Numbered from the stretch's first letter, positions 25,720 to 31,700 are shown. The stretch is 64,000 bases of DNA from Macrostomum lignano (GCA_002269645.1 NIVC01002941.1:33929-97928), one strand, 5' to 3'. Notes: a model not told the origin generated them from the letters alone. Numbers and translations are program-made.

Positions 25720-28700
25720 TCAAAGCAGCACCGACTTGGTCAGGCATTTCTGCCTTCTCGACCTCGACAACAAGTTATTGTGCGTCAGCTCAATGTTCAG
25801 GCGTCTTCCGCCAGAGGATGCGGCAGTGGAGCCCTGCTGCTGCTGCGAAGAGCCGGGCACTTCAGCCAGCTGCTGCTGGAGCTCCTCCTCGATGGCGGCT
25901 CGCGATTTGCCCTCGAACAGGGCCAGCCGGCGAACCAGGACCTCGCGATCGTGAAGCAGCTGCGCCACCCGCTCGCGCATGCCGTGCATGTCCCGCTGGA
26001 ACTGGTCGCTGCGTCGACAGATCTCGGCGTCGACGTCCTCCAGCTGCGAGCTGATGCAATCGTCCAGGTCTGTCTGCACGGCGATGTTGTTCAACAGCAT
26101 CCGGTTGGAGTAGGTCAACCCGCTCAGACCGCTCATGACGCTCTCCGGCTCCGCTGTGGCCGCGCCAACCGCTTCAAAAGTCGACGAGCCACCTGCGGCA
26201 CCGGTAGCGGATGAGATTGCATCTCCAGACAGCAGTAGACTGTCCCGGTTGCTGGAGTACTTCTGCAGTCTGGTGTGTTTGATGAGGTAGATGGGTTAGA
26301 CATTGCGGATGGGTTTGGAATAGACATGAATATCCTAAACAGAGATGGGATGGACATCACAGATAGAGATGGGATAGACATCACAGATATAGATGGGATA
26401 GACATCACAGATATAGATGGGATAGACATCACAGACAGGGATGGGATAGACATCACAGATTCCAGATAGAGATAGGATAGACATCACAGATAGAGATGGG
26501 ATAGACATCACAGATAGAGATGGGATAGACATCACAGATAGGGATGGGATAGACATCACAGATATAGATGGGATAGACATCACAGATATAGATGGGATAG
26601 ACATCACAGACAGGGATGGGATAGACATCACAGATTCCAGATAGAGATAGGATAGACATCACAGATAGAGATGGGATAGACATCACAGATAGAGATGGGA
26701 TAGACATCACAGATAGGGATGGGATAGACATCACAGATAGAGATGGGATAGACATCACAGATATAGATGGGATAGACATCACAGATATAGATGGGATAGA
26801 CATCACAGATATAGATGGGATAGACATCACAGATATAGATGGGATAGACATCACAGATATAGATGGGATAGACATCACAGATATAGATGGGATAGACATC
26901 ACAGACAGGGATGGGATAGACATCACAGATTCCAGATAGAGATAGGATAGACATCACAGATAGAGATGGGATAGACATCACAGATAGAGATGGGATAGAC
27001 ATCACAGATAGGGATGGGATAGACATCACAGATAGAGATGGGATAGACATCACAGATATAGATGGGATAGACATCACAGATATAGATGGGATAGACATCA
27101 CAGATAGGGATGGGATATACATCACAGATAGAGATGGGATAGATATCACAGATAGGGATGGGATAGACATCACAGATATTGATGGGATAGACATCACAGA
27201 TATAGATGGGATAGACATCACAGATATAGATGGGATAGACATCACAGACAGGGATGGGATAGACATCACAGACAGGGATGGGATAGACATCACAGATTCC
27301 AGATAGAGATAGGATAGACATCACAGATATAGATGGGATAGACATCACAGATAGAGATGGGATAGACATCACAGATAGGGATGGGATAGACATCACAGAT
27401 AGAGATGGGATAGACATCACAGATATAGATGGGATAGACATCACAGATAGAGATGGGATAGACATCACAGATAGAGATGGGATAGACATCACAGATAGAG
27501 ATGGGATAGACATCACAGATAGGGATGGGATAGACATCACAGATAGAGATGGGATAGACATCACAGATATAGATGGGATAGACATCACAGATAGAGATGG
27601 GATAGACATCACAGATAGAGATGGGATAGACATCACAGATAGAGATGGGATAGACATCACAGATCCCAGATAGAAATGGGATAGACATCACAGATCCCAG
27701 ATAGAAATGGGATAGACATTCCGGTTAGAAAAGATAGATCTCCTAAGAGTAGACAGTACACCGTAAGCCTGCAAATAATTAGCCAGAAAAATTCCGTTTC
27801 CAAATCTTAAACCCCTTGCCTCAGCGCCACTGGCAGGTGAGTCTGCTTGCTGAGCCGCTCTGCTTCCATCTTTCTGTAGAGAACCAGATGACGATAGACG
27901 CGCTGAAATTATTGCCAAAACGGAATTTAGAGAAGTCGCTTTGGTAAATAAGTCTGGATCGCAACAAGTAAATTTACAAAATATTCCACAAGTTTCATGA
28001 AAAGTGCAGCTAACCTGACTGACAGGTAGACAGCAGTCTGGGGGCAGCTTCGACCTCCTAATGAGGGGAAACGCCAGGTAATAAAATGTCTGCTCGCAGC
28101 ACATGGTGACCAGGCCGAGCAGCACCCCGCAGCAGAACAGCAGCAGGGGACCGGCGAAGTTTGTGGGCGTCAGGCGGATCTTTTTCTGTGGGACAGATAG
28201 ATAGATAGATAGATAGATAGATAGATAGATAGATAGATAGATAGATAGATAGATAGATAGATAGATAGATAGATAGATAAATAGATAGATAGATAGATAG
28301 ATAGATAGATAGATAGATAGATAGATAGATAAATAGATAGATAGATAGATAGATAGATAGATAGATAGATAGATAGATAGATAGATAGATAGATAGATAG
28401 ATAGATAGATAGATAGATAGATAGATAGATAGATAGATAGATAGATAGATAGATAGATAGATAGATAGATAGATAGATAGATAGATAGATAGATAGATAG
28501 ATAGATAGATAGATAGATAGATAGATAGATAGATAGATAGATAGATAGATAGATAGATAGATAGATAGATAGGTAGATAGATAGATAGATAGATAGATAG
28601 ATAGATAGATAGATAGATAGATAGATAGATAGATAGATAGATAGATAGATATTCATAAGGCAGTTTGAAACTGCAAACCACGCACTCGGAAGATATTGAA

Positions 28701-31700
28701 GGTTACCAGTTGTCGAATGTTCGAAAAAAACCGATATTTCGGCCCAGACTGGGCCTTCGTCAGGGTTTATTTATTCGGGTTTAAAAACAAATATATTGGC
28801 AGTGAAGTTATTGTAACATAATTTCAATATATATATATGCGACTTTTGGGGGTGCACTGAGCAGTGTTGAGTAAAGATGTGTACGTATAATTAGTTAAAA
28901 ACGTGAGTTGAAGCACGCTGATTGGTTAAAGATTGGCAGCTTAAAGCCTTGCACAAAAAATATTAAAGATGTTAGGTGCTATAGAAAAACAGATTTAGAG
29001 CGTAGAAGTGTATGAATAAGCATCTTGAAAAGTTCAACAAATAAGTTATTTACGCCCGTAGAATTGAGAACAAATATTAAATTAAAACAGAGCACTGAGA
29101 ACTTTGAGAACTGAGAAAATTGAGTCGCCAGGCAGGCCACTAGTTGCAGTTGGCGGCGTCTGGTCACAGATCGCCGCCTGCACAGCCCCTGGTCACAGGC
29201 GACTGGGCACTGCAGATCAGTTGAGGCTAGATTATCAGTAGTAGTAGCACTAGTAGTTGCAGTAGTAGCTCGTAGTAGTAGTAATGGAAGTAGTAGTAGT
29301 ACAAGTATTAGTAGAGTAGTAGTAGAGCAGTCGTAGGCGTAGTCGTAGTAGAGACGTACTGGTAAGCAGTTATTTGAAGTAGCCAGGCAGGCCACTAGTC
29401 GCAGTTGGCGGCGTCTGGTCACAGATCGCCGCCTGCACAGCCCCTGGTCACAGGCGACTGGGCACTGCGGATCAGTTGAAGCTAGATTTTCAGTAGTAGT
29501 AGCACTAGTAGTTGCAGTAGTAGTAGTAGTGGTAGTAGAGTAGTAGTAGTACAGTCGTAGTCGTAGCCGTAGTCGTAGTAGTGTCGTGCGTCTTAAATAT
29601 TCAGCTGCAGAAATAGTACTCTTGCTTATCCCAAGTAGATTTTTGGCGGAGAATAGCTCGTATACGAAGATATTTTGTTGACAAACATGGCGAGCCTCAA
29701 TAATAGTCCGGTCCTGGGTACAGATATTCATAAGGCAGTTTGAAACTGCAAACCACGCACTCGGAAGATATTGAAGGTTACCAGTTGTCGAATGTTCGAA
29801 AAAAACCGATATTTCGGCCCAGACTGGGCCTTCGTCAGGGTTTATTTATTCGGGTTTAAAAACAAATATATTGGCAGTGAAGTTATTGTAACATAATTTC
29901 AATATATATATATGCGACTTTTGGGGGTGCACTGAGCAGTGTTGAGTAAAGATGTGTACGTATAATTAGTTAAAAACGTGAGTTGAAGCACGCTGATTGG
30001 TTAAAGATTGGCAGCTTAAAGCCTTGCACAAAAAATATTAAAGATGTTAGGTGCTATAGAAAAACAGATTTAGAGCGTAGAAGTGTATGAATAAGCATCT
30101 TGAAAAGTTCAACAAATAAGTTATTTACGCCCGTAGAATTGAGAACAAATATTAAATTAAAACAGAGCACTGAGAACTTTGAGAACTGAGAAAATTGAGT
30201 CGCCAGGCAGGCCACTAGTTGCAGTTGGCGGCGTCTGGTCACAGATCGCCGCCTGCACAGCCCCTGGTCACAGGCGACTGGGCACTGCAGATCAGTTGAG
30301 GCTAGATTATCAGTAGTAGTAGCACTAGTAGTTGCAGTAGTAGCTAGATAGATAGATAGATAGATAGATAGATAGATAGATAGATAGGTAGATAGATAGA
30401 TAGATAGATAGATAGATAGATAGATAGATAGATAGATAGATAGATAGATAGATAGATAGATAGATAGATAGATAGATAGATAGATAGATAGATAGATAGA
30501 TAGATAGATAGATAGATAGATAGATAGATAGATAGATAGATAGATAGATAAATAGATAGATAGATAGATAGATAGATAGATAGATAGATAGATAGATAGA
30601 TAGATAGATAGATAGATAGATAGATAGATAGATAGATAGATAGATAGATAGATAGATAGATAGATAGATAGATAGATAGATAGATAGATAGATAGATAGA
30701 TAGATAGATAGATAGATAGATAGATAGATAGATAGATAGATAGATAGATAGATAGATAGATAGATAGATAGATAGATAGATAGATAAATAGATAGATAGA
30801 TAGATAGATAGATAGATAGATAGATAGATAGATAGATAGATAGATAGATAGATAGATAGATAGATAGATAGATAGATAGATAGATAGATAGATAGATAGA
30901 TAGATAGATAGATAGATAGATAGATAGATAGATAGATAGATAGATAGATAGATAGATAGATAGATAGATAGATAGATAGATAGATAGATAGATAGATAGA
31001 TAGATAGATAGATAGATAGATAGATAGATAGATAGATAGATAGATAGATAGATAGATAGATAGATAGATAGATAGATAGATAGATAGATAGATAGATAGA
31101 TAGATAGATAGATAGATAGATAGATAGATAGATAGATAGATAGATAGATAGATAGATAGATAGATAGATAGATAGATAGATAGATAGATAGATAGATAGA
31201 TAGATAGATAGATAGATAGATAGATAGATAGATAGATAGATAGATAGATAGATAGATAGATAGATAGATAGATAGATAGATAGGTAGATAGATAGATAGA
31301 TAGATAGATAGATAGGTAGATAGACAGTCGCGCACCCCATCAGAGCAGCGGTTATTCATTTCAAGTTGCAGCAGTCGGTGTGAAATCGGGTGCGGAGCGG
31401 CGCAGGGAAGGAACTGATAAAATTTGCATAGCAATGAAACGGTTTCAAGAGATTCGGGCCAGCACGAGGCCGGGAGGTTTAAATAAGGAATGAATCTGGG
31501 AAACTTCGTGACGGGACGTGGCTAACTGGAAATGGCGAATAATTTAAAAAATGCATTTCCCATCGCAATACCGGCAGTGAAATGAGGTTTTCAAAAGCTC
31601 GACTGCACTGCAAGACGCGACGTATGCAGATTTATCGATTTGTGATCTCCTGTTCAAATGTACTTTTATTTAACCCGAAGCCGGCACCCTTACGGGTGCT

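Follow-up and report, generated by a model that had tools for sequence, protein, structure and literature searches.

The 64,000-nt stretch of Macrostomum lignano DNA considered here (GCA_002269645.1 NIVC01002941.1:33929-97928), referred to below as the window, carries on its minus strand a GluN3-like receptor gene and, within one intron of this gene, a 1,699-nt insertion (28647-30345, minus) made up of 1.58 units of a 1,075-nt non-coding repeat. The insertion harbors two copies of a minimal type I hammerhead ribozyme motif and is probably a recent, non-autonomous retroelement derived from Penelope-like elements (PLEs), equivalent to a large retrozyme of the kind that lacks long terminal repeats (non-LTR retrozyme).

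The host gene is recognized from the exon at 35436-35912 (minus), which in a PDB search matches GluN3A with E=3e-35 as opposed to 2e-20 for GluN2 subunits and which carries the SYTANLAAF motif; a word-indexed protein search with this exon returned no match. An S2-like exon (~32573-32303, minus; ...GKPFGRVGY...) ends in CAAGGG/GTGAGC, and an M4-like exon starts at 28185 (minus; CCCACAG/AAAAAG). The S1-like and S2-like open reading frames (ORFs) alone have no match in the PDB, and these exons are therefore assigned by motif-level resemblance and splice-site reading. The intron predicted between the S2-like and M4-like exons spans 28186-32302 on the minus strand (4,117 nt), with its donor at 32302 and its acceptor at 28186, and the flanking frames join in phase 0 (...PRSQG/...). 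The insertion lies in this intron in sense orientation to the gene. Repeats account for approximately 88% of the intron, namely a 22-nt minisatellite, two (TATC)n arrays, and the insertion itself. The minisatellite begins 7 nt past the donor, while the (TATC)n array stops 9 nt before the AG acceptor; this microsatellite would effectively supply the pyrimidine-rich tract of the 3′ splice site. On the same strand, an ORF at 25720-26136 with a heptad-like, charged segment and no Pfam match may represent the C-terminal coiled-coil exon of the gene.

Read 5′ to 3′ on the minus strand, the insertion and its flanks comprise 246 copies of TATC, a truncated copy of the unit running from 30345 to 29722, a full-length unit running from 29721 to 28647, and another 114 copies of TATC. 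The upstream target array occupies 30346-31324 (from 30341 in the repeat scan) with 98% matches, and the downstream array occupies 28195-28646 (to 28651 in the repeat scan). This target is 75% A+T, and the insertion is in phase with it, such that the (TATC)n/(AGAT)n phase is restored once 28647-30345 is removed. The full-length unit begins GTACCCAGG and ends TGAATATCT, and the upstream copy lacks the 5′ part of the unit, retains unit positions 452-1075, and constitutes a pseudo-LTR. The stretches 28647-29270 and 29722-30345 can be superimposed over 624 nt at an offset of 1075 with 0 mismatches; because the two copies are 100% identical, the insertion is young. An internal duplication of ~253 nt is present within the unit (29578-29378 versus 29325-29123, 90% identity), and self-BLAST detects no further copy or fragment of the unit in the 64-kb window. 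Neither inverted repeats nor ends resembling an LTR, a primer-binding site, or a polypurine tract occur at the insertion, which excludes an LTR element, a Helitron, and a terminal-inverted-repeat transposon.

The hammerhead motif is contained in the 41-mer AAACCCTGACGAAGGCCCAGTCTGGGCCGAAATATCGGTTT (= AAACCCUGACGAAGGCCCAGUCUGGGCCGAAAUAUCGGUUU), which occurs exactly twice in the window, both times on the minus strand and 1075 nt apart. Copy 1 lies at 29803-29843 with a predicted cut between 29808 and 29807, and copy 2 lies at 28728-28768 with a predicted cut between 28733 and 28732. In both copies the cut falls between C17 and G1.1, and the excised piece would be 1075 nt long. The layout is AAACC, CUGACGA, a bulged A, GGCCCA-GUC-UGGGCC, GAA, AUAU, the C that precedes the cut, and GGUUU. 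All core positions are present in type I order (C3 U4 G5 A6 N7 G8 A9, G12 A13 A14, A15.1-U16.1, and C17) at 28763-28733 and 29838-29808. In copy 2 the bulged A is at 28756, the pair G10.1-C11.1 is formed by G28755 and C28741, and U15.2/A16.2 form the palindrome. The minimum-energy fold of the 41-mer is precisely a helix I of 5 bp and a helix II of 6 bp (-14.3 kcal/mol). Helix III is reduced to the AUAU palindrome, and no stable helix III exists within a single motif. Both copies lie in a duplication and thus count as one event.

A descriptor for the minimal hammerhead ribozyme (min-HHR) that asks for a helix I of at least 4 bp, CUGANGA, a bulge of 0-1 nt, a helix II of at least 4 bp, GAA, a palindromic A..U helix III, and H17 matches only these two sites on both strands of the window. 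The chance expectation is 0.003 per dinucleotide-shuffled window, the observed stem lengths were not reached in any of 300 shuffles, and a looser descriptor again finds just the two sites as compared to 0.17 expected. The Rfam ribozyme families have no match at gathering thresholds on either strand of the whole window. This silence is expected because the motif has no intramolecular helix III, and recognition consequently depends on the hand-made descriptor and on comparison with the literature; sequences in the supplementary files of hammerhead papers include none that matches the motif. Extrapolated from 0.003 per 64 kb, a gigabase genome would contain tens of chance matches to the relaxed descriptor, so the motif alone is not decisive and the surrounding anatomy settles its identity. 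Judged by their sequence and setting, both motifs are genuine members of the class of minimal type I hammerheads found in Penelope-like elements and retrozymes. A second ribozyme of opposite polarity, or a viroid-like replicon, is ruled out by the lack of an Rfam match on either strand. An earlier note on this stretch had described two identical minimal hammerheads 1075 nt apart, in an element at 28648-30345 with about 620 bp of redundancy, sense to a GluN3-like gene and in its intron 6. The double occurrence of the 41-mer bears out the motifs, the limits and the redundancy were right within 1 nt (28647-30345; 624 nt), and the GluN3A match upholds gene and strand, while the intron number agrees with a rough exon count only.

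Several other signals lie within the unit. From the cut of copy 2 to the 3′ end of the insertion there are 86 nt (28647-28732, minus), with a hairpin (GCAGU-UUCAA-ACUGC) at 28674-28660 and the end of the insertion just beyond it; this 3′ module is a candidate start region for reverse transcription. Directly 5′ of the hammerhead are two overlapping AAUAAA hexamers (28766-28775, minus; 29841-29850 in copy 1), which are putative polyadenylation signals, and a U7 run follows just past the cut in each repeat copy. Approximately 60-170 nt upstream, at 28921-28936 and 28826-28838 (minus, together with their +1075 copies), the unit has a TATA-like (AT)6 stretch as well as two CCAAT boxes. The CCAAT, TATA-like, AAUAAA, and U7 arrangement looks like the promoter/poly(A) block of a pseudo-LTR, in sense to the host gene. 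The sole long ORF of the unit (250 aa, low-complexity) has no Pfam domain, exact-protein look-ups of the element ORFs (250, 41, and 45 aa) return no match, and the reverse transcriptase (RT)-endonuclease (EN) protein of Poseidon_Ac, a PLE of Anolis carolinensis (PAc), has no tblastn match in the unit or the whole window (E<=1e-3). The absence of PLE coding capacity from the unit indicates a non-autonomous derivative rather than an autonomous PLE.

This anatomy is that of a PLE insertion. PLEs usually insert as 5′-truncated partial tandems whose full copy has a truncated one in front of it, the latter serving as a pseudo-LTR; near the 3′ end, this pseudo-LTR repeat contains the hammerhead, and microsatellites are favored targets (PMC8557442). 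The 5′-truncated copy before the full copy, the pseudo-LTR, and the hammerhead within the repeat are all found here. Published PLE targets are (TA)n, (CA)n, and 5′-ATT-3′ (PMC8557442, PMC11167929); the (TATC)n tract is likewise an AT-rich microsatellite but is absent from the reported targets. The min-HHRs of metazoan PLEs have an extra nucleotide that separates position 9 from 10.1, a helix I of 4-5 bp, an enlarged helix II, and a conserved G10.1-C11.1 pair, and a palindrome at 15.2-16.2 replaces helix III, so the active form is two paired copies (PMC4209133). All four hallmarks of these ribozymes that are not part of the descriptor are present in M. lignano. The resemblance extends to the core, the extra unpaired base after A9, G10.1-C11.1, the long helix II, the helix I of 4-5 bp that lacks a defined loop 1, the 4-nt palindrome in place of helix III, and the terminal direct repeat. 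The difference from autonomous PLEs lies between the repeats, where about 2.5-3 kb of coding sequence gives way to a non-coding, partly low-complexity spacer of 1 kb with no RT/GIY-YIG ORF (PMC4209133).

PAc is the one PLE studied biochemically, and its RT-binding and initiation region is located just downstream of the hammerhead (PMC11167929). Its transcript is multimeric and has two internal sites at which reverse transcription begins, and these sites set the genomic 3′ ends; an optional tail of ~34 nt corresponds to consensus nt 85-119, and the hammerhead cut is at nt 26-30 (PMC11167929). From these positions, PAc 3′ ends fall ~55-59 and 89-93 nt past the cut; the one insertion in the window ends 86 nt past it, a distance near these. 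Features in common are the bulged-base hammerhead, the palindromic 4-nt helix III, the AT-rich target, and the tandem organization. Unlike the M. lignano unit, PAc is an autonomous element in which hammerhead and start codon overlap, and outside the hammerhead core the two have no significant similarity.

The same hammerhead design recurs in metagenome contigs that apparently derive from an animal host. A search in which only the core, the outer helix II, and the place of the bulge were held constant returned 111 such contigs (loci L001-L111: MKWU01..., JGIcombinedJ30088_..., Ga0209544_..., Ga0123357_..., etc.). These loci have no sequence in common with the 1,075-nt unit beyond the hammerhead and hence represent a different family, in which the same design can be sampled independently. 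Of the 94 distinct copies, a palindromic helix III (ANNU) is found in 72%, compared to 25% expected, and a helix I of at least 4 bp in 39%, compared to ~2% expected. The motif of the dominant family (66 copies) is GCAA/CUGAAGA/A/GGCCC..GGGCC/GAA/ACGU/U. Past the cut, homology to the consensus of this family stops sharply at 57-59 nt in 21 of the 66 copies and at 90-92 nt in another 29, and these end classes reproduce the published PLE tail signature. In six contigs a Poseidon-like RT/EN coding sequence lies beside the hammerhead, with E values down to 1e-62 (tblastn with the PAc protein). In one of them (L098) the ORF is followed by the hammerhead, and in another (L106) a hammerhead-bearing tail is followed by a 5′-truncated ORF. 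Pfam assigns no domain to two metagenome ORFs, both of which are PLE RTs by the PAc tblastn search. Alongside the literature, the metagenome data thus tie the hammerhead design of the window to PLEs.

Under the name of non-LTR retrozymes, PLE-derived tandem units that are non-coding and contain type I hammerheads have been described (PMC7229834; bioRxiv 10.64898/2026.07.22.740005). Their operational definition requires a minimum of two non-coding units in consecutive tandem order, a complete type I hammerhead in every unit, and a hammerhead fold energy below -5 kcal/mol (Li et al. 2026, bioRxiv 10.64898/2026.07.22.740005); with two complete motifs, 1.58 units, and -14.3 kcal/mol, the insertion falls within it. 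Common to both are the non-coding head-to-tail units, the sense type I hammerhead in each unit, the supposed mobilization by PLEs, and the frequency of dimers and intronic copies. The distinguishing traits are (i) unit size, 1,075 nt versus about 170-400 nt (PMC7229834) or 51-972 bp (bioRxiv 10.64898/2026.07.22.740005), the latter range coming from a pipeline whose repeat finder is capped at period 1000 and hence below the 1075-nt period of this insertion, (ii) the hammerhead, which is the minimal PLE variant here and the classical type with loop-loop contacts in retrozymes, and (iii) copy number, 1.58 units versus families with anything from dimers to arrays 300 units long.

Taken together, these observations make a recent, non-autonomous, PLE-derived element the probable identity of the insertion. 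Several points weigh against this assignment. The Rfam models of hammerheads and of all other ribozymes have no match on either strand of 28600-30400 even at E<=10, and apart from the hammerhead the insertion has no sequence homology to any PLE. Downstream of the cut, matches of 8-9 nt are insignificant versus shuffles (p=0.07-0.2); TTCGACAAC, common to PAc, and AACTGCCT, common to the metagenome family, were dropped as evidence of homology for lack of significance against shuffles. The cut-to-end distance of 86 nt, known from one insertion, is near but outside both end classes of PAc and of the metagenome family, and a target-site duplication is unreadable inside a microsatellite. Lastly, no second copy of the unit was found in the window, the 111 metagenome loci, the viral contigs, the prokaryote genome contigs, or the exact-protein look-ups, a set of collections that includes no animal genome, and membership of a dispersed mobile family is thus putative.

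For such an element we infer the following route. A multimeric, or circularized, transcript of the 1,075-nt unit would be copied in trans by the RT/GIY-YIG endonuclease of a PLE, with the endonuclease nicking the AT-rich (TATC)n tract. Reverse transcription would begin at an internal site 86 nt downstream of a hammerhead cut, cross two hammerhead sites, and abort after 1.58 unit lengths, leaving the truncated copy before the full unit. The cDNA spans both hammerhead sites, and the template must therefore have been either uncleaved there or religated into a circle, alternatives that one insertion cannot separate. The hammerheads would be part of the element's own 3′ module, and because helix III could be completed solely by pairing two copies through AUAU, cleavage is expected to be slow or protein-assisted.

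The partial tandem could also have arisen at the DNA level, after arrival of a single copy (a solo PLE tail or another repeat) and later unequal exchange or replication slippage, in which case it would be uninformative on the mechanism of transposition. The tandem-repeat-rich intron and the ~253-nt duplication already present in the unit are favorable settings for such an event, and a satellite-birth route of retrozyme arrays has been discussed (bioRxiv 10.64898/2026.07.22.740005). Even so, the right-hand end of the duplication coincides with the 3′ end of the insertion and the extra copy is truncated only at its 5′ side, precisely the ends that run-on reverse transcription of a multimeric template predicts (PMC8557442, PMC11167929), whereas a DNA duplication has no reason to stop at the element boundary; this origin is consequently rather unlikely. 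Still harder to credit, and very improbable, is that the structure is not real, with the hammerhead having arisen by chance inside some unrelated repeat, or with an assembly error at the flanking microsatellites having produced the tandem. By chance alone a gigabase genome would contain some tens of sequences that fit the relaxed descriptor, tandems of the PLE type are a known difficulty for assemblies (PMC8557442), and Rfam has no match, but 0 shuffles reached the observed stem lengths, features outside the descriptor are also present (G10.1-C11.1 and a position in a partial tandem, 86 nt from its end), and the same design recurs beside PLE genes elsewhere. An assembly error alone, moreover, creates no hammerhead.

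A separate question is whether the hammerheads would cut the receptor pre-mRNA. The earlier note had proposed a brake comparable to the intronic CPEB3 ribozyme, that is, an active retrozyme-like device in which a cis dimer cuts the GluN3-like pre-mRNA co-transcriptionally, frees a 1075-nt circularized RNA, and throttles the receptor. Two complete same-sense hammerheads do occur in one intron; in the fold of the circular monomer, helix II has pairing probabilities of 0.65-0.99 (at least 0.85 in five of six pairs) and helix I of 0.26-0.40, and one Xenopus dimer (REP4) was cleaved very efficiently in vitro (bioRxiv 10.64898/2026.07.22.740005). The remaining Xenopus retrozyme dimers stayed uncleaved (8/9, same source), however, and PLE min-HHR monomers show no cleavage and their dimers and trimers low cleavage, mostly at non-physiological Mg2+ (PMC4209133). 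For PAc, RNA-seq yields no in vivo reads with a terminus at the hammerhead site, and the PLE protein was required for cleavage in vitro (PMC11167929). The helix III shared in a dimer consists of four A-U pairs and amounts to +1.6 kcal/mol as a free duplex; the double hammerhead is a kissing or pseudoknotted complex beyond nearest-neighbor evaluation. In the whole 1,699-nt transcript at equilibrium, both hammerhead folds have a probability of at most 0.03, and the preferred state is an inactive extended duplex between the near-palindromic helix II strands of one copy and those of the other (cofolding and full-length folding); the putative circle is 50% paired (z = -2.6), unlike the compact fold typical of retrozyme circles. 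The next exon lies ~548 nt past cut 2 and 1,622 nt past cut 1, equivalent to a few seconds to tens of seconds of transcription, as opposed to ~9.9 kb and a half-life of 2-3 min for the Cpeb3 ribozyme, and slow intronic ribozymes leave splicing unimpaired (PMC10919898, PMC2995048); a slow ribozyme at such short distances should lose the race with exon definition. Furthermore, 100% identity of the copies signifies a recent origin, at odds with a conserved device, and hence provides no evidence of selection. On these grounds the proposed brake is very unlikely, and the effect of this intronic passenger on its host gene is most likely neutral or mildly harmful. The AAUAAA pair and U7 run, lying in sense, would be a more ordinary route for disturbing the gene.

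The CPEB3 ribozyme, which is HDV-like (named for hepatitis delta virus), and the amniote intronic hammerheads HH9 and HH10 resemble the insertion in that a sense self-cleaving motif, predicted in the present case, lies in an intron of a neuronal or regulatory gene. Each of those ribozymes exists as a single copy, is conserved across orders, has a complete structure, and is measurably fast, with an exon distance matched to its half-life. The M. lignano element, in contrast, is a repeat that inserted very recently; its motif is minimal and probably slow, lies 0.5-1.6 kb from the next exon, and has no Rfam hammerhead match. An active retrozyme of more than 1 kb, perhaps aided by a PLE protein or a host chaperone, that cuts the GluN3-like pre-mRNA, frees the 1,075-nt circle, and lowers or re-routes receptor expression is extremely unlikely; if true, it would represent a transposon-borne, polymorphic counterpart of the CPEB3 ribozyme.

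The assignment to Penelope/retrozyme-type minimal hammerheads in a partial tandem within a (GATA)n tract, as first proposed in the earlier note, is sustained by the presence of all published features of PLE min-HHRs. The anatomy would also permit the suggested double cleavage, with release of a 1075-nt RNA whose ends a tRNA ligase could join. The portrayal of the locus as an undescribed system does not stand, for this is the standard anatomy of a PLE-type insertion (PMC8557442, PMC4209133, PMC11167929) and PLE-derived non-LTR retrozymes have already been described. Neither is its size a novelty, given published consensus lengths of up to 972 bp under the capped period, nor its intronic site, given that ~44% of Xenopus tropicalis retrozyme copies are intronic (bioRxiv 10.64898/2026.07.22.740005). 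The outcome is one of annotation, in that a repeat left unclassified by standard tools can now be assigned to the PLE/retrozyme world, whose mobile elements are common among animal genomes. Such tools would miss it because Rfam is blind to the ribozyme and the unit has no ORF for a PLE protein. As one modest data point, a non-coding unit slightly above the published retrozyme range appears to keep the 3′ module of an autonomous PLE (a minimal hammerhead plus ~86 nt), which agrees with the 2024 finding of an RT-binding and initiation region just downstream of the hammerhead (PMC11167929). Should the genome hold a family of such units, they would offer a convenient natural means to find out what portion of a PLE RNA mobilization in trans requires. 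The practical concern for the host gene is an ordinary one: 0.5 kb upstream of one of its splice acceptors there is a sense insertion that carries two AAUAAA signals.

Other mobile elements are present in the window. A non-LTR retrotransposon at 2180-7499 (plus) has a 512-aa ORF1-like frame followed by endonuclease, RT, and RNase H frames; Pfam detects Exo_endo_phos_2 weakly and RNase_H at 2e-11, and the second ORF is split across three overlapping frames. At 58011-59870 (minus), an intact 619-aa ORF encodes an N-terminal PHD finger and a MULE (Mutator-like element) transposase domain (Pfam 1.5e-13), and its predicted product is possibly an active or domesticated Mutator-like transposase. Exact-protein look-ups of these neighboring MULE and LINE (long interspersed nuclear element) ORFs gave no match. 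Micro- and minisatellites are unusually dense at 9951-13985, 26341-27664, 32602-33062, 33795-34151, and 39692-40210. The satellite arrays of the window include a second (TATC)n tract without an insertion, (ATAGA)71, a ~4-kb array of a 36-nt unit, a (CAGA)n array that abuts the acceptor region of the S2-like exon, and, immediately downstream of the M4-like exon, a 24-mer repeated in 54 copies.

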